This document shows positions 14,999-31,100 of a stretch of 64,000 bases of DNA, piece by piece. This DNA comes from Hyphochytrium catenoides (taxonomy: Eukaryota > Protista > Hyphochytriomycota). How positions within the stretch are numbered: the first letter of the stretch is position 1; each line of letters opens with the position of its first letter. The notes under the pieces are model-generated. The model was not told where the DNA came from and searched no databases. It saw nothing but the letters and a program-made list of their open reading frames with translations. Position numbers and translations under genes: made by a program. The stretch lies in NCBI GenBank assembly GCA_900088475.1, contig FLMG01000988.1, positions 62,001 to 126,000 of the forward strand. The letters are read 5' to 3'.

Positions 14999-17848
14999 TC
15001 ATTCCACCTCGAAGAGTCCGTTCAGCTCTAGTTCTCGGAGGCGGGCTACCTCTTTTGAAAGCAGCGATTCGTCCTTGTTAGCCAGCAAAATTGTGCCAGG
15101 GCATGTGAAAATATCCCTTGTCTTCTTGAGCTCATCTCCTGGTTTAAGATAGATAGCTTTATGCACAATGGACTCCATGGCATCGATTTCTTTTAGTCCT
15201 GGCATAGACTTCAAGATCCCTTCCTGATAGGAAACCAGCATTGCCTCGATGGCCTCACTCTTTAGCTCTCGGCAAGCGTCAGGAAGCTTGTTAAAGGCTT
15301 CTCGGTCGAGGTATGCGTCGATGCTAACTCCAACCTGGTCGTAGCCCACTGCCACGTCTGTCAACATGCACCATTGTCCTTCCCCACCATGGCATCTCGC
15401 ACCAACCTCCACTAGACAAGGGCTGCCGCGGCAAAGCTTTACCTCACCATGTCCTGGACCGTTTACAAACCCCAGAGCATCCAGCACCTTCTTATGATAG
15501 GCGATAATCTGCTCTATGAGTTGGCCCCTGCATGGTACTAAGCGCACAGTGAAGTAGACGAAAGCTGCATCGTTCACTGGCCGCTTGTCATATTTCCAGA
15601 CGGCAGTCACCTTGTGCACTCCATCTCGGCTAACAGTATCAACAACATATTCATCGCCATCCAGGTACTCTTGCACCAGAACTGTCTCGTTGGCAATGCC
15701 CAAGCCGTTGATCTTGCCAATAATCCGATGGAAGGCCTGCTCAAGCTCACCCCTAGAGTTACAGAGGGTCACGTCATCACTACCGGCACTGTCCACAGGC
15801 TTGATGACAACCTTGAATGGTACGGGGTGGTACCGGTTCAAGAAGTCTTCCACATCACTCCATTCTTTACATCGTTTTTGCTCCACAGCTCTAAGACCGG
15901 CGGCACGAACGGTCTCACCCATTATGTATTTGTCCCGTCTTGCAGTAGATGTTTGAAGAGGGTTCGCCCGCACCCCAAGTGCATTAGCTAGGAGATCTGC
16001 CACAAGGACACCAGTTTCCGCACCAGGGATGACAGCCAAAATCTGGGGACTAATGTCGCGGAGCTTTCTGCAAAGGTCATCCATGTTCCCTCGGTAGTCC
16101 ACCGTAGCCTCGAAAGTTAGCTCCAGGCCTGGTGGGACGAGCCCTGCCACATGCTCCATGGATTCGAGGCTATCACTATACACGCAAACACAGCGGTACC
16201 CTCGGTCGCTGACTCTCTTGGCGAGCACAGCTCCGGTGCTGAAGGGATCGACCACCACAACAATTCCGGTCACTTTCTCGTCCTCCATAGCCTCGGGGCG
16301 CGCGATCTCATACATGCCGCTCTTGCACAGCTGGTGGAATCGGTCGAAGTCCCGGTCAAGCTGCTCCTTTGACTCGTTGGACATCATAAGGCTCATTGGA
16401 GACGTGAATAGATCTACCGTAGGCACGATCAGGTGACCAACCTCCACCTTCACCTCGCAAGTACGGAATGACGACATTTTCCTCACTTCCTCTAAGCCGG
16501 GATAGCCCTTCAGAATTCCTCTCTGGTAGCAGACACCATCAATCTCCATGGCGTACTTTTGGAGCTTCATGGGTCTTTCCGGAAGAGCAGCGAACTTATC
16601 TGGTTCCAGGTAAGCGTCCACTGTCACTGACACCTGGTTGTAGCCCACGCATTCATCAGCCAGTGGAACGAAACCGCCTCCACCTCCGTGGCACCTGGCG
16701 CCCACCTCTACCAGGCAGGGCTCATCTCTAACGAACTTTATTTCTCCATGTGTAGGGCCGTGACGAATGCCGAGCGCCTTGATGACCTGTAACTGATAGT
16801 CAATGACCTTCTGAATGACGGGATCATCCGCAGAGCGAATTCTAGAGTTGAAGTATACGAAGGGTGCACCATTAACAGCCCTCTTGTCATACTGCCATAC
16901 CGCCACGACCTTGTGGTTACCATCGCGGCCGACGGTGTCAACAACATATTCCGTTCCGTCCAGAAATTCCTGTACCAGCACATGCTTATTCTCCAGACCG
17001 AGAGTGTTGATTTTCCCCATAATATTTCCGAAGGCTTTCTTCACTTCCTCTTCAGAGTGGCATTTGTAGACATCGTCACTCCCGGCCGAGTCGACAGGCT
17101 TGACTACGCAGACAAAGGGTCTCGGGTTCCATGAGGCCAAGAACTCACTAATCTCGCTCCATTGACTGCACATGCGTTGCTGCACAGCACGAAGACCAAC
17201 CTCACGAATTCTCTCCCCCATGGCATACTTATTCCGGCGAGCCTCAGAGAGTTTCGTGCCATTGCCCATCAAATTCAGCCTCTCAGCTACAATGCCTGTC
17301 AGCATGACTCCAGTCTCGGCGCCTGCAAGAACTGCCACTATGCGAAAAGGTAGGCTCTTCAGGGAATTTATGGTAGTACTAGTTGCTTCATCGGCCGGTG
17401 CCCCTCCATCATGGTAGACAACGGCCCCGTAGGGCACTCGAATCTCAGAATGAGACAGACTCTCAAGCAGGGAGGCCATCTTGTCCAGGGTGTCACTGTA
17501 GAGACACACAACTGTGTAGCCTCGTTTATGGACTTCGTGGGCGACATTAAGGCCAGTTGTGAAAGGATCTACAACCACCACCGCTTCTTTCTCCACCACT
17601 TCAGCTTGGATGACCGACGGTTTGCGCGAACGCTTTTCCTTCACGTTGAAGTAGCGCCGGTAAAGAACCTCATTATACTTCATGCCCCTGCGAACTTGAT
17701 AATTAGAGGCGTTTCCAGCAAATGTTGAGGCTCTGACAAGCGGATTGAAACCCTCGCCCAAAACATCGTTCCTAGTTATGAACCGCGGATCATATGTCGT
17801 TGACCTAGAAGCTGCAGTCAGCGGTTTAAAGTCTCCGAAATGTGACAT
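14999..17848 (-). CDS. Intronless tandem double ATP-grasp ligase (L-amino-acid ligase / DdaF-NikS-like family), 949 aa from the first ATG
   Basis: One uninterrupted ORF with two homologous ~430-aa modules, each with VVVVDPF(T/S)TG, GAETGV, ARR.KY.MGE, V(V/I)KPVDSAGSDDV, LVQE(F/Y)LDG.EYVVDTV, GP.HGE(I/V)K and CLVEVGARCHGG. The first ATG is at 17848; the track start at 17944 is a GTG. Confidence 0.92.
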   Translation of the reverse strand: MSHFGDFKPLTAASRSTTYDPRFITRNDVLGEGFNPLVRASTFAGNASNYQVRRGMKYNEVLYRRYFNVKEKRSRKPSVIQAEVVEKEAVVVVDPFTTGLNVAHEVHKRGYTVVCLYSDTLDKMASLLESLSHSEIRVPYGAVVYHDGGAPADEATSTTINSLKSLPFRIVAVLAGAETGVMLTGIVAERLNLMGNGTKLSEARRNKYAMGERIREVGLRAVQQRMCSQWSEISEFLASWNPRPFVCVVKPVDSAGSDDVYKCHSEEEVKKAFGNIMGKINTLGLENKHVLVQEFLDGTEYVVDTVGRDGNHKVVAVWQYDKRAVNGAPFVYFNSRIRSADDPVIQKVIDYQLQVIKALGIRHGPTHGEIKFVRDEPCLVEVGARCHGGGGGFVPLADECVGYNQVSVTVDAYLEPDKFAALPERPMKLQKYAMEIDGVCYQRGILKGYPGLEEVRKMSSFRTCEVKVEVGHLIVPTVDLFTSPMSLMMSNESKEQLDRDFDRFHQLCKSGMYEIARPEAMEDEKVTGIVVVVDPFSTGAVLAKRVSDRGYRCVCVYSDSLESMEHVAGLVPPGLELTFEATVDYRGNMDDLCRKLRDISPQILAVIPGAETGVLVADLLANALGVRANPLQTSTARRDKYIMGETVRAAGLRAVEQKRCKEWSDVEDFLNRYHPVPFKVVIKPVDSAGSDDVTLCNSRGELEQAFHRIIGKINGLGIANETVLVQEYLDGDEYVVDTVSRDGVHKVTAVWKYDKRPVNDAAFVYFTVRLVPCRGQLIEQIIAYHKKVLDALGFVNGPGHGEVKLCRGSPCLVEVGARCHGGEGQWCMLTDVAVGYDQVGVSIDAYLDREAFNKLPDACRELKSEAIEAMLVSYQEGILKSMPGLKEIDAMESIVHKAIYLKPGDELKKTRDIFTCPGTILLANKDESLLSKEVARLRELELNGLFEVE

Positions 17849-19359: not shown

Positions 19360-20751
19360 CTAGAACATATACGACGATCCAGCAGTCTCCTTGCGCTGTT
19401 GCTTGACAAAGTCAATATCTATCTCTCCATCGCTCAGAAAGGTGCTCTTGTTCTCGTTAGTCCTGTTCTCTGAGACCTCTGTGGGGAACTCGCTAGGTGT
19501 GTACGAATTGCGCAGTTCCGGAGGGGGAACTGAGGGCCGCACCAGAGTGTACGGCTTTGGTGAGGCTCGGTGGGACTCGAAACTGTGCCATGTTTCTTCA
19601 TTAGTTGCTGTCCGGCGATCTTCTGCGCTGTCGGAGTTGTTGCTTGTAGTGTTACGAGCGATCTCTATGGCCCCAGCAGTAAGAGGATTGAAACATTTTG
19701 AGCAATAGCTGATTTCACCTCTGACCCTGTTCTCCGTAGAGCAGCGAGGGCAATTAACAAGCATCATGAACGAGAGATGGGAACCTTTGGCAAAGGTACT
19801 AGCGGGGACAGCAGGGGCATTTGATGTCTCCTGAGGCTCTTGCTCGCCACCATTCCAACTCATGGATGTAATGGGAGTCTTCACATCTACGTAATAGTCC
19901 GACTGCAGCTCAACATCGCGGTACAGCCCCTCATTCTCTTCTTGAATTCGCCTATTGCGCACCATATAGAGTCCAATGACAATAAGAGCAATCAGGACGC
20001 TTCCGCCTCCTACGATTCCTAGAATAAGGGGAAGCTTCTTGTTTTCGTTCTTACTACTGCTGCCATTTTGTGGCTGCGAGCTTGACGGATCGACTCCGAC
20101 ACCTTCATCGTTATTAGATCCATCTTCTGATGCACTATCCCCGTTCTCTACCTGAGGCCGAGCTCCACCTGTAGCAGGTCGAGATTCTGTGCTTTGATCT
20201 ACGGAAGTCTTCGATGCCACTGTGTCTGTCTGGCTACCATTTGTGGGGTCCGAGTTGGTAACCGAAGGAGAAGGTGAATTGCCATCGTTAGACGATGAAG
20301 ATGGACTGGGAGCGCTACCACTATTTAGTTCTGACGATGGAGATTGATCAGGTACAGCAGCGGGTGCCGCAGCTGTGGATGGCGAGGCGGCAGATGGAGA
20401 CTGTGATGGCGGCGAAGGGGTAGGAGATGGGGTTGGAGCTGGTGGTGACTGCGATGGGGAGCTTGGTGGTGGGCTTGGTGGTGAGGGTCCTGACGGAACG
20501 GGTGTTGGAGAAGGAGAGGGAGGAGGCTGTGGAGGTCTGGTTGGTGGAGGTGGTGACGCTGAAGGCACCGGAGGAGGGGTTGGGCTTGGATTTGGTACTG
20601 GCTGGACCGTGGGACTTGGGGAGGGAATGTCCGGGCTTGGTGGAGGAACACTAGGTGAAGGTGCTACTACATCTGTCTGCGCGAGCGCAACGTCATGCAT
20701 CAAAGCCAGGGCAAGAGACGTGGCCCATAAACTTAAGCAGATAAGTCTCAT
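19360..20751 (-). CDS. Intronless single-pass type I membrane protein: signal peptide, Pro/Ser-rich ectodomain, TM helix, cytoplasmic CxxC-x13-CxxC zinc ribbon
   Basis: 463-aa ORF: MRLICLSLWATSLALALMHDVALA (signal-like), PSPSP/PPP repeats, LPLILGIVGGGSVLIALIVIGLYMV followed by RNRR (positive-inside), then CPRCSTENRVRGEISYCSKC. Confidence 0.85.
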   Translation of the reverse strand: MRLICLSLWATSLALALMHDVALAQTDVVAPSPSVPPPSPDIPSPSPTVQPVPNPSPTPPPVPSASPPPPTRPPQPPPSPSPTPVPSGPSPPSPPPSSPSQSPPAPTPSPTPSPPSQSPSAASPSTAAAPAAVPDQSPSSELNSGSAPSPSSSSNDGNSPSPSVTNSDPTNGSQTDTVASKTSVDQSTESRPATGGARPQVENGDSASEDGSNNDEGVGVDPSSSQPQNGSSSKNENKKLPLILGIVGGGSVLIALIVIGLYMVRNRRIQEENEGLYRDVELQSDYYVDVKTPITSMSWNGGEQEPQETSNAPAVPASTFAKGSHLSFMMLVNCPRCSTENRVRGEISYCSKCFNPLTAGAIEIARNTTSNNSDSAEDRRTATNEETWHSFESHRASPKPYTLVRPSVPPPELRNSYTPSEFPTEVSENRTNENKSTFLSDGEIDIDFVKQQRKETAGSSYMF

Positions 20752-22712: not shown

Positions 22713-24364
22713 TTACTGACCCTGGAGCTTAGCAAGGTCTGCCTGAACCTCAGCCTTCACTTTCTGAATGTCCGCCTCAATCTCGGCCTTCACATCTGCC
22801 AAAGCAAGCTTACGGTTTCCTTGAAGGACAGGTTGATCCTTAATTTTCGCTATATCAGCTTGAACCTCTGCTTCCGCAGCTGCTACTTCATCCTTCACCT
22901 TTTGAACATCGGCCTGAATCTCGGCTTTGATAGCGTCCAGAGCAGCCAGTCTTCTGTTACGTCTTTGACCCTTCAATTTGGCGATATCAGCTTGGACCTC
23001 GGCCTCGATCGCTGCTTCAGCTGCTGCCACCTCGTCCTTGACTTTCTGCACATCAGCCTGGATTTCAGCTTTGATGGCATCCAAGGCGGCCAACCTTCTG
23101 TTACGTCTTTGACCCTTCAGTTTGGCGATGTCAGCTTGGACTTCGGCTTCGATGGCCGCTTCAGCTGCCGCAACCTCGTCCTTGACCTTCTGCACATCTG
23201 CCTGGATTTCGGCTTTGATTGCATCAAGAGCAGCCAGATTTCTGCGACCACGAAGAGCGCGAGCCTTAGCCTGTTTCTGCTTTTTCTTCTTGGCTGCAGC
23301 GGTTGTGGGTGCGTTGGTCGGAGCAGCCGAAGTGATTGCAGCTTGGGCGGCCTGAACCTGCATCGCGGTGGCGAATCCAGCCGCCAGAGCAGGATCCATT
23401 GCAGGATTAATGGGTAGCGGGGTCGCTGAGGTGACGGGTTGCGCAGTGCCTGCTGCAGCTGTTGCGCCAGCAGTAGGGGTGGCTTGGGTCTGTGCGTTCT
23501 TTGCCTTCGCAGCTTTAGTGGTTGGCGTCGCTTGCGTCTTCGCGTTCTTTTTTGCCTTTGCAGCTTTGGTGGTCGGCGTGGCCTGCGTTTTAGCTGCTTT
23601 CTGCTTCTTCGCTGCCTGTTTGGCACCATTCTGGGCTGCAGCCCCGTTAGCTGCTGCTGCATTCCCCGCCCCTGCACCTCCAGCGGNNNNNNNNNNNNNN
23701 NNNNNNNNNNNNNNNNNNNNNNNNNTACCGTCGGAGCCACATTTGCAGCAGGAGCTGCAGCTGCCCCACCAGCAGGCATGAGCGTTACTTGCTGCAGGAT
23801 GGCATACGGAGTTCTCGTCGTTCCGACCGAGACGACGCAGGTGACGGTGACCGGTCCCACATCTTGCGCCGGAGCTGTCCATGTAAAGGTCGTTGGTGTT
23901 CCGGGTGTATTCTTAGTCGTGGCATCCGCCTGAGTTATTGTTGACTCAGGTGCGTCGTTGACGACATTGGCCGTGTTACAAGCGCCAGCACTCTGGGCTC
24001 GATATCCTTGGTCAATTGTGAACTGGCCAACGTGGTTGGGACGGTTGGTGTCCGCATTCGCATCCGCACCGAAATCGTGCGCAGCACCCTGCGCTACGTA
24101 CATGAGAACGCCTTGCCACTTGGAGTCACTGTTTATCATAATCTGCATTGCCTGGCCAGGGGTGTAGGTTGGGCTGGAAGTGGTGACGGTCATTCCCAGC
24201 GTAGCCGGATCAGTAGATCCCTGAACCTTGTGGCCTTTGGTAATGACTGGAGGATTCACAATGCACTTGGGAGCCCCATTAGGAAGCGCATTCGTCTCCC
24301 AGGTGCATGCAAGAGCAATGAAGGAAGCAATGAGAAGATTTGTGGACCTCATGGCTTGATTCAC
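22713..24364 (-). CDS. Secreted Reeler-domain precursor with an Ala/Lys/Thr-rich linker and C-terminal repeated amphipathic peptides delimited by R-x-L motifs; reading frame broken only across the N gap
   Basis: N-terminal frame: signal peptide (MRSTNLLIASFIALACTWETNA), then LPNGAPKC...H...TYTPGQ...WQGVLMYV...VGQF...C...ITQ...TFTWTAP..DVGPVT, a Reeler-like pattern. The C-terminal frame after the gap (22713-23686) has TQATPT repeats and four AEIQADVQKVK-type units. The frame switch lies within the 39-N gap. Confidence 0.85.
22716..23240 (-). repeat. Coding tandem repeat with a 144-bp (48-aa) period: two full copies plus two shorter derived units
   Basis: CTTCTGTTACGTCTTTGACC occurs at 22951 and 23095 (period 144). 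The unit is AALDAIKAEIQADVQKVKDEVAAAEAAIEAEVQADIAKLKGQRRNRRL. Confidence 0.95.
23687..23725. other. Assembly gap (39 N) inside the Reeler precursor gene
   Basis: Run of N in the sequence. Confidence 1.
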
Positions 24365-28107: not shown

Positions 28108-31100
28108 ATGGATAGCGCTAAGGACGAAGAGGTTCATCCTTCGATGGTCCTTTCTGAAGACAGCTCAACCTCTGATGATGAAAGCGTAGAAGAGGCCAAT
28201 AACAATTTGGCTGAAATAGCAGTCCTCCTCCAAGCCACACAGGGTAACCCCCGTGACTACGATGGGCATGTCAGGCTCATTGAGGCGCTGCGTTCACATG
28301 GAGATCTAGGTCTTGTACGAATAGCGAGGGAGGCGTTTCACGCCCAGTTTCCTCTTACGAAAGGTAACCCATACTTCTTTGTGCTCCATTCGCCGCGACA
28401 TCATTTAACCTTACAGTACATAGAGTTATGGTTTGAATGGATTGAGGACGAGCAGCGTGTCGCGCTTGGAAAGGACAATCTCGACGAGATTGCTTCTTTG
28501 TTTGAGCAAGCCATTCAGGACTATCCAGAAGTTGAAACGTGGCTGAAGTACATCGAGTTCTCCAAAAATCGTCTCCAGGAGGTATGGACTTGGAGAAACC
28601 TTCCAGCTACATAACCTAAGGTGTAAAATGCGTCTAGGACGAGGACACTGTTACCGCAGATGATGTCAGGGCTCTCTATGAAAGGGCAGTCAACTCTGTC
28701 GGGGCCTATCTAGTCCAAGGTCCGGACCTGTGGGCGTCATACCGAGGGTTCGAGANNNNNNNNNNNNNNNNNNNNNNNNNNNNNNNNNNNNNNNNNNNNN
28801 NNNNNNNCGCATCCGGGATCTCTACAAGCGGCAGTTATCTATTCCCTTTCCAAGCTACGACTCGGTAAGTCAATGAGCCATTCCCTAAGCAGATACGTCA
28901 ACTCATGTAGTACATACAGGTATTGGCGGAGTTTAACAATTGGAACGAGCATAATACTGTCGTGCCTAAGCACGATAAAGAAAAGATTATTACTTTTGTG
29001 AATACAAAGGCCAAGGAGCTACGCGAAGCTACTCAGGTCCCGCTCGTCGTTTGCAAACACTTCCTTATACAACAATAACCCCCCCATCACAGAGATGCAC
29101 CGCCTTCAAAGTCCAATTGGAAGCTTCCAAGGAGCTGAGTCAGACTGCGTCTTTATGGAGGGAATATCTCACCGAGGAAGCAAGACATAAGCCAGATCCC
29201 TCCAGACTATTTTGTTTGTATGAAGAGGCCTTGTGTAGGACGTGTTTAAGCATTGAGCTCTGGCGGGATTACGTAGAAGCGGTTCTCCAGACTGTAAACG
29301 ACTACAAATTTGCTGAGAGGATCCTAAGGAGAGCTCTGAGGTTTGCGGCTTTATTCACCTACTTATTAGCCAACCCTTCGCTAACATGCAGTCCGGACAG
29401 GAATACTCCATGGTCCGGCTCTCTTTGGGCAACAATGCTCCAATGCCGTGAAGTTGTTGGTGCAGAGCATGAAGAAATGCTTGCCCTGGTTGATGAAGCC
29501 CTTGGGCAAACTCTTCAAAGTGCGACGGATTACCTCGAGGTCCTCTTCGAGAATGTCTATCACCACCGTAGAAAAGCCATAAGGGATCTGGGCAGTGACG
29601 AGAATGAGCCTGACTTTCCTGAGAAAGTTAGGCTTCTCGAAGGCGCGATAGAGAAACTTTTCGCTTTTCTGGAGCAGTACTATCCAGAATGGACTGAGGC
29701 CTGGTAAGTAGTTCACAGTCCAAAGAGGTGTTAAGCAGGTCTTAGTTGGATACCACAGGTGTACGGCTTCGTTAATAGCAGCCCGTCTTGAGCTGGACGC
29801 GTGTGAGAATGAAGAAAGGTACTTGAAATACTCAGAAATTTTTCTGAAGCACGGCGGTCGCAGCTGGGAAAACTGGGTCAAAGTTATTCATATTGACAGA
29901 GGGAGACAAGACTGGAAGCGTTGCAGGTGTGAATTAATTTCTTGTTCGGGCTCATACTGGCCTGGTTTCTTTCTGGTCCGTCAATACACCTCAAAGTAGT
30001 CGCCGTAGTGCCCTTGACCCCTGGCCCACCTCTAGAGCTATTGGACAAAGCTTCATCCTTACTATATCAAGGCAAGCTGGACCTCGGTTTGCATTGACCC
30101 ATCCGGCTTGCTTTTCTCAGGAGCCTCTATAAACGAGCTGTCCAGGTAGTCACAGACTTCCCTGTGCAAATTGGTCTTGCATGGGTGCAGTTTGAGAGGG
30201 AGACTGGTAGTCTGGAGTCACTTCGTGAGGCAAAGAGACGGATAAGCGCTAGAGTATCGAATTTCGAGGATTATCTCAGCAGCTATGCCCTTACCAGCGC
30301 TCCTCAAGGAGAACAGCCAGGCTTAGGTCCTTTCGATCTGCCTCTTCTCTTTACACAGCATGTCTCGTAACCTTAACTTTTATTGTCAAACACTCCTCCT
30401 ACCTTGACAGCGACCAAGAAGTACGGAAAGCGAGGAAAGGACGACTTTGCTGACCAGCAGCATTCGAAGAAGCGGAAGCTGGAGCACGGTGGTGCTGAGA
30501 CGTCATATCCGAAGGAAAACACAGTGTTTGTACGGAATATAGCATTTGAATCGACCGATGAGGAGATCAGACAGCTGCTATCTCAGGTATACAGTCACTT
30601 ACTGGAAGTCTAAACCTAAGCACAAGCTGACGTGATGCTGTCGGCAGCGTGCTGAACCCGTGGATATTTCGCGAGTGCGAGGGATGGCTTTCGTCCAGTA
30701 TAAGTCTCAGGTTTGAACCTTTCGAACCTCTAGGACTGCTGCTTTGCCATTCCGTAACCCCTTACCGACCGTCTCTTTCTAGAAAGATGCTTTGGAGACA
30801 ACTAAGCTAAGTGGAACGGAACTTCACGGTCGAGAGATCACTATAGAACTTTACAAGAGCAAGCCTGAGGTCGGTCAGCGAGACAAAAAGCAGAACAGAA
30901 AGGGAAAAGAAGAAAAGAAAAGGTAAGACACTCGTGCAGCTTAAAGAAGTGGCTGATCACCTTCATGCTTGATTGAGCCAAGCCTGACCGACCTCGGGTT
31001 ACCATTGTTTGCTCTCAATAGTGCTCTTCAAGCAGATGCCGAACCAGTCCGGGAGGGAGGATGGAAAGTTCTTCCTACAACCATATATGTCGGTGGTCTG

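Follow-up and report, generated by a model that had tools for sequence, protein, structure and literature searches.

The window, that is, the whole stretch of 64,000 nucleotides analysed here (Hyphochytrium catenoides assembly GCA_900088475.1, contig FLMG01000988.1, positions 62,001 to 126,000), carries on its minus strand what is very probably one gene, running from an ATG at 24352 to a stop codon at 22713-22715 and interrupted by an assembly gap at 23687-23725. Its features, from start to stop, are as follows.

24287..24352, minus strand: start codon and predicted signal peptide, residues 1-22 (translation; alignment of 12 relatives)
23768..24286, minus strand: Reeler domain, residues 23-195 (Pfam PF02014; AlphaFold/PDB matches; 28 invariant columns)
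23726..23767, minus strand: start of the linker, Ala/Gly-rich, frame open to the gap without a stop
23687..23725, no strand: assembly gap of 39 N; in-frame joining needs a true length of 3k+1 bases
23268..23684, minus strand: linker of 139 residues, rich in Ala, Thr, Lys, Gln and Pro (translation)
23235..23267, minus strand: junction 1, KARALRGRRNL, with R-x-L twice and R-G-R-R
23109..23234, minus strand: unit 1, predicted 42-residue amphipathic helix, net charge -4, ending KLKGQ (AlphaFold; periodicity analysis)
23091..23108, minus strand: junction 2, RRNRRL; codon differences from junction 3 all silent
22965..23090, minus strand: unit 2, identical in protein to unit 1 (codon comparison)
22947..22964, minus strand: junction 3, RRNRRL
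22818..22946, minus strand: unit 3, a 43-residue variant with six helix residues absent and the end altered to KIKDQPVLQG
22806..22817, minus strand: junction 4, NRKL, degenerate; R-x-L retained, dibasic pair RK
22716..22805, minus strand: unit 4, 30 residues, equal to a unit minus its central ~11 residues; its end, KLQGQ, abuts the stop

The frame before the gap encodes 209 residues and the frame after it, from 23684 to the stop, encodes 323. The layout given in the initial annotation (head, linker, KARALRGRRNL, units separated by RRNRRL, RRNRRL and NRKL, and a stop) is borne out on the minus strand. Tandem Repeats Finder reports the array in the tail DNA as a 144-nt period with 2.6 copies and 83% matches. 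The linker contains 18 Lys and no Arg, and includes an internal duplication of about 15 residues (AKTQATPTTKAAKAK). No paralogue of the gene was found within the 64-kb window, and an Rfam search of the whole window gave no match. Elsewhere in the window, an intronless ORF of 949 residues (15002-17848, minus strand) encodes two ATP-grasp domains and an L-amino-acid-ligase C-terminal domain, with Pfam matches to ATP-grasp_4 (6e-30), ATP-grasp_3 (1e-14) and LAL_C2 (4e-9). The next ORF downstream of the gene (19363-20751, minus strand; 463 residues) reaches the threshold for no family and matches only DUF7577, weakly. A second assembly gap, of 52 N, lies at 28756-28807.

The N-terminus, judged by eye and from the alignment of relatives, has a basic start and a hydrophobic core ending in T-N-A within residues 1-22, followed by LPNGAPKC. 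The signal peptide is expected to be cut after T-N-A, directly before LPNGAPKC, and all 12 aligned relatives begin their conserved domain at A-L-P-x-G-A-P-K-C. Pfam PF02014 (Reeler) matches residues 40-174 (profile positions 7-122 of 131) at 34.6 bits, above its cut-off of 21, and 28 columns are invariant across the 13 aligned Reeler sequences. When the Reeler alignment was run as a profile against PDB sequences, only chance matches came back, and recognition of a structural relative required a fold search. With an AlphaFold model of the head built from the alignment with the 12 relatives (pTM 0.69, mean pLDDT 68), the top eight PDB matches are all chains of the human F-spondin reeler domain (2zou, 2zot and 3coo; E-values of 4e-8 to 7e-6, target TM 0.61-0.66). 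The signal peptide prediction, the Pfam score above its cut-off and the F-spondin reeler matches together confirm the secreted Reeler-domain head that had first been proposed from the letters alone, for which a Pfam check had been advised.

Repeat units and arginine junctions

The 42-residue units that had been described as identical are the same at the protein level, while their DNA is not. Between unit 1 with its spacer and unit 2 with its spacer, 18 of the 144 nucleotides differ, in 17 codons, without a single amino-acid change. Silent sites make up about 23%, so 18 silent differences out of 18 would arise by chance with a probability of about 3e-12. Unit 3 likewise shares its first 26 residues with units 1 and 2, although 16 and 18 of these 26 codons differ silently from theirs; 15.9 differing codons would be expected were codons drawn at random from the gene's own usage. 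Identical residues encoded by such divergent codons imply that the copies are old, that their silent sites are saturated and that the peptide itself has stayed unchanged. Gene conversion would have made the DNA alike too, so it does not explain the identity. The pattern is like that of polyubiquitin or of neuropeptide precursors, an analogy by which each unit may work on its own, and it supports selection acting on the peptide sequence of the unit.

Arginine and lysine are distributed very differently in the tail. All 13 Arg among the 323 residues after the gap sit in the four junctions, whereas of the 39 Lys all but two, which are in junctions, belong to the linker or the units. This split has a probability of 1e-7 over all basic residues of the tail, or 3e-4 when duplicated parts are counted once. 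As the initial annotation had noted, every unit begins directly after an R-x-L motif (RNL, RRL, RRL and RKL at the four unit starts), and the sole residues invariant over these starts are an Arg at -3 and a Leu at -1. Expressed as putative cleavage sites, all four have Arg at P3 and Leu at P1, with Arg at P2, which ASP5 also requires, in two and Asn and Lys in one each; the sites are predicted to be helical. A fifth R-x-L (RAL) occurs seven residues before unit 1, and there are no others elsewhere in the protein. Junctions 1-3 also match the furin/kexin-type pattern R-x-R-R (as R-G-R-R or R-N-R-R), while junction 4 has only R-K. The units all end in L-x-G-x, namely KLKGQ, KLKGQ, VLQGN and KLQGQ, and the final one stops there with no basic spacer, an indirect hint that the units may be released. 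The ALRG followed by RRNL ahead of unit 1 looks like a worn unit end and its spacer. Confinement of Arg to the junctions is as expected of recognition sites, and the junctions fit putative sites of this kind placed between independent units.

The repeated amphipathic helices of the initial annotation reappear in structure prediction. In a single-sequence AlphaFold model of the tail (mean pLDDT 82, pTM 0.36), one helix spans tail residues 2-143, passing continuously through junctions 1-3, and after a break at DQPVLQGN a second helix spans residues 152-183. Each unit is predicted to present a stripe of Ile, Val and Leu with Ala opposite, one acidic flank and one basic or polar flank. Folding as a four-helix bundle was considered and set aside on this model, which is extended (pTM 0.36), although a monomer model leaves bundles and oligomers possible. 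Hydrophobicity is periodic over 11 residues, peaking at 11/5 and 11/3, and the signal is coherent across units, reaching 0.20 at 11/3 versus 0.05 at 3.5, or about 2.8 SD above shuffled sequences. A unit has a net charge of -4, and a unit with its spacer a net charge of 0. The 48-residue period is approximately 4x11+4, which keeps the stripe almost in register through the junctions, where two Arg would fall within it. The region of junction 4 has gained Pro and Gly, which implies that a continuous helix across the junctions is dispensable.

Relatives of the head and searches with the tail

A search with the Reeler head, which allowed proteins of 226-719 residues and a limited number of candidates, listed 12 matches (P0001-P0012), and among these matches all are hypothetical proteins of chytrid fungi, with identities of 38-46% and E-values of 5e-37 to 3e-20. 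Their C-termini fall into three types, four proteins to each: a GPI-like hydrophobic end (P0001, P0003, P0005 and P0007), a poly-acidic end (P0002, P0004, P0010 and P0011) and an amphipathic-helix end (P0006, P0008, P0009 and P0012). The interchange of these ends suggests that they are alternative ways to hold a Reeler head at the cell surface. Lys-rich Ala/Thr linkers similar to the one described here occur in P0004, P0009, P0010 and P0011; the linker, for its part, is only superficially like the Lys clusters of diatom silica-targeting proteins.

Several relatives also share elements of the tail. To illustrate, P0008 has, directly after its Reeler domain, the sequence ADIAKIK, a 7-mer in common with unit 3, followed by LTRRS, a Lys-rich linker and helical tail repeats without basic sites. 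In P0006 and P0009 the C-terminus consists of a Lys cluster, a single helix and LRRR. The similarity of the P0008 and P0009 tails to the tail studied here is weak, with single-comparison E-values of 0.001-0.005. A helix with an Arg cluster behind it has probably long been a feature of the Reeler family, while the tandem 48-residue array is, to judge from these sequences, specific to this gene. The initial annotation had proposed looking for homologues that keep the R-x-L spacers; the searches found no relative of the array, and the tail-bearing chytrid proteins have a helix and then RR or RRR rather than R-x-L. Since the listed relatives of the head are chytrid only while the host is a stramenopile, the question arises of gene sharing between chytrids and hyphochytrids, and the Reeler gene could have been shared in this way.

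Searches with the tail itself were largely empty. The linker plus tail, and the tail alone, found no relatives in a word-indexed collection of 5.8 billion proteins, in which low-complexity words probably swamped the candidates. A full HMMER scan of 1.84 billion representatives gave 16 weak matches to the tail, which were rejected as homologues; all are generic coiled coils, the short ones being CCDC90-like tail-anchored proteins. Scanning metagenomes, whether with the tail or with the Reeler alignment, gave no confirmed match. In the collections searched, then, nothing matched the fusion of a Reeler domain to a series of identical helical units under strong constraint. The tail is an orphan, and the constraint on its array is unusually strict.

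Fate of the tail

The reading that we tentatively prefer is that cleavage of the protein yields a Reeler head together with acidic helical peptides, three or four in number, that would self-assemble. One gene would encode a secreted protein composed of a signal peptide, a Reeler-type beta-sandwich head, an Ala/Thr/Lys linker, probably glycosylated, and four acidic amphipathic helical modules. The arginine junctions would be cut in the secretory pathway, either after the Leu of R-x-L, by analogy with the silaffin and silacidin precursors of diatoms, the RXLR proteins of oomycetes and the RRL proteins of Toxoplasma, or after R-x-R-R by a kexin/furin-type protease, with subsequent trimming of the basic remnants. 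R-x-L accounts for four sites and for uniform N-termini, while R-x-R-R accounts for three sites and for the RR kept in chytrid relatives. The products would be the Reeler head and peptides of 30-43 residues, each ending in L-x-G-x, which might come together as coiled coils at the surface or wall of the cell, akin to fungal repellent peptides. That the tail may be such a multi-peptide precursor is plausible from the Arg junctions and the constraint on the units.

Among the alternatives, a tail that is never cut is a strong rival, which we rate only somewhat below cleavage. The tail would then be a hendecad-type coiled-coil stalk, or an assembly or attachment module, that oligomerises Reeler heads or holds them at the wall or membrane; its clusters of Arg would make contacts with anionic wall polymers or lipids, and it would replace the GPI-type anchor of paralogous family members. 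Several observations count against cleavage or for this alternative. The modelled helix runs through junctions 1-3 at pLDDT 82 and is continuous over tail residues 2-143, and RXLR-type sites within structured regions have been reported to remain uncut (PMC11754927). The 11/3 signal that is coherent across units, some 2.8 SD above shuffles, and the phase of the stripe would also fit an uncut rod, and the oppositely charged helix flanks are as in coiled-coil interfaces. Chytrid relatives have a GPI-like, acidic or amphipathic-helix end at the same position, and the amphipathic tails of P0006, P0008 and P0009 lack sites between repeats, those of P0008 and P0009 being weakly similar to the tail itself. 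Nevertheless, two Arg per junction would land on core positions of the stripe, the helix is broken at junction 4, and so strict a separation of junction Arg from unit Lys would not be expected were charge all that mattered. Perfect identity at saturated silent divergence would also be unusual for a stalk, as generic coiled coils tolerate exchanges of Ile with Val, Asp with Glu and Lys with Arg. If the tail stays uncut, the product would simply be a surface protein confined to its lineage, whose coiled-coil tail is unusual.

A second alternative concerns the gap, which the initial annotation had flagged and which is real, in that the 39 N break the frame as written. The coding frame before the gap ends flush with it and the one after begins two bases beyond, so the halves are out of frame as written and would join only if the true gap were 3k+1 bases long. 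The halves might thus not form one protein, either through a wrong scaffold join or through a stop codon, frameshift or gene boundary hidden in the gap, leaving separate genes or a broken gene; the published H. catenoides assembly consists of short-read scaffolds of a heterozygous diploid, with which N gaps are in keeping (PMC5795050). The frame shift is no evidence against continuity, because scaffolder gap sizes are mere estimates, and no overlap between the two flanks, such as a negative gap would leave, was found. Neither frame meets a stop before reaching the gap, and both flanks share an Ala/Gly-rich composition. In the half beyond it, which lacks its own signal peptide and is under strong purifying selection, no Met occurs ahead of residue 96. 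P0004, P0006, P0008, P0009 and P0010, moreover, carry a Reeler domain, an Ala-rich stretch, a Lys-rich linker and a tail in this order on a single chain. On these grounds one gene is favoured: we infer that head and tail are very probably continuous, and regard separate or broken genes as improbable.

Release of the units as membrane-active or antimicrobial peptides, in the manner of Candida Ece1/candidalysin, is the least credible alternative: membrane activity had been suggested earlier, and the units are predicted amphipathic helices of 30-43 residues behind basic processing-type sites, but they are acidic (net charge -4 each) and unlike cationic lytic peptides, with low mean hydrophobicity, a hydrophobic moment of only ~0.25 at 100 degrees and an apolar stripe one residue wide facing an Ala face, such that a cationic antimicrobial reading was rejected on charge and hydrophobic moment. 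The modelled profile of the units would suit coiled-coil self-association rather than membrane lysis, making self-assembly the more plausible activity.

Comparison with known systems

The best library matches of the tail are CCDC90-like (PF07798) proteins, P0020 (E-value of 4.5e-5) and P0027 (7e-4), which have similar periodic helices of the form AE-[ILV]-K/Q-AD-[IV], a likeness that is generic to coiled coils. Both match the PF07798 profile, whereas the tail gives no match to it at E-values up to 1; unlike them, it has Arg junctions and no membrane anchor. The chytrid Reeler proteins P0001-P0012 resemble the present protein in their LPxGAPKC start, two conserved Cys and Ala-rich plus Lys-rich linker, yet none has tandem 48-residue units or repeated Arg junctions, and many end in GPI-like or poly-acidic sequences.

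Cleavage at related motifs is known from proteins matured at R-x-L by aspartic proteases of the plasmepsin V/ASP5 type (PEXEL, TEXEL and oomycete RXLR). Oomycete RXLR is cut after the Leu before secretion (PMC11754927), and Toxoplasma ASP5 cuts RRL followed by Ala or Ser, also at sites far from the N-terminus and near the C-terminus (PMC4764566). Junctions 2 and 3 here read RRL followed by Ala, which is the ASP5 consensus. In contrast, PEXEL and RXLR sites lie near the signal peptide, in disordered sequence and once per protein, while the four sites here are more than 350 residues in and are predicted to be helical.

Among fungal precursors, the Kex2-processed Rep1 of Ustilago maydis is the nearest in kind, being a secreted precursor that yields amphipathic wall peptides (PMC6339444), surface peptides similar in size to the units here. 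The published rule for Kex2-processed repeat proteins calls for a secreted protein without a membrane span that gives at least four fragments at KR or RR with repeated cores (PMC6339444). In line with this rule, in-silico cutting of the tail at its five RR positions gives six fragments, of which two have identical cores and a third a near-identical one, and no hydrophobic span was seen by eye after the predicted signal peptide. The differences from Rep1 are that the host is probably not a fungus, that there are only two or three near-identical cores, that a large folded domain precedes them and that the peptides are predicted to be helical and acidic, whereas Rep1 peptides form amyloid-like fibrils.

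A close parallel in layout comes from diatoms, whose silaffin, silacidin, cingulin and frustulin precursors undergo RXL-type cutting: cleavage at RRIL, RRNL or RXL between repeats leaves mature peptides without the motif (PMC4557024, PMC5525289), and the protease that removes RXL motifs from diatom wall proteins is still unknown (PMC5525289). Sil1p silaffins (Cylindrotheca) and silacidins (Thalassiosira) have a signal peptide and a non-repeat N-terminal part followed by tandem units, each with RRxL behind it. The present protein likewise has a predicted signal peptide and then tandem units, all four of which start directly after R-x-L; junction 1 is literally RRNL, as in Sil1p, and both hosts are stramenopiles. 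Its units, however, are predicted Ser-free amphipathic helices, not Lys/Ser-rich or phospho-acidic peptides, its N-terminal part is a folded Reeler domain, and there is no sequence relationship. H. catenoides is not known to make silica.

A broader version of the cleavage reading would hold that a free-living, non-silicifying stramenopile pseudofungus uses R-x-L secretory cleavage to make identical self-assembling wall peptides from a Reeler carrier, convergently with the fungal repellents. We rate this as unlikely. If it were true, diatom RXL, oomycete RXLR and apicomplexan RRL cutting would be one ancestral, general-purpose maturation pathway, and the protein would offer a simple multi-site substrate for finding the diatom-type protease. 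Should the junctions be cut at all, the gene would provide a compact, natural four-site substrate in a heterotroph that can be cultured, and R-x-L processing would no longer be confined to silica proteins and host-targeted effectors.
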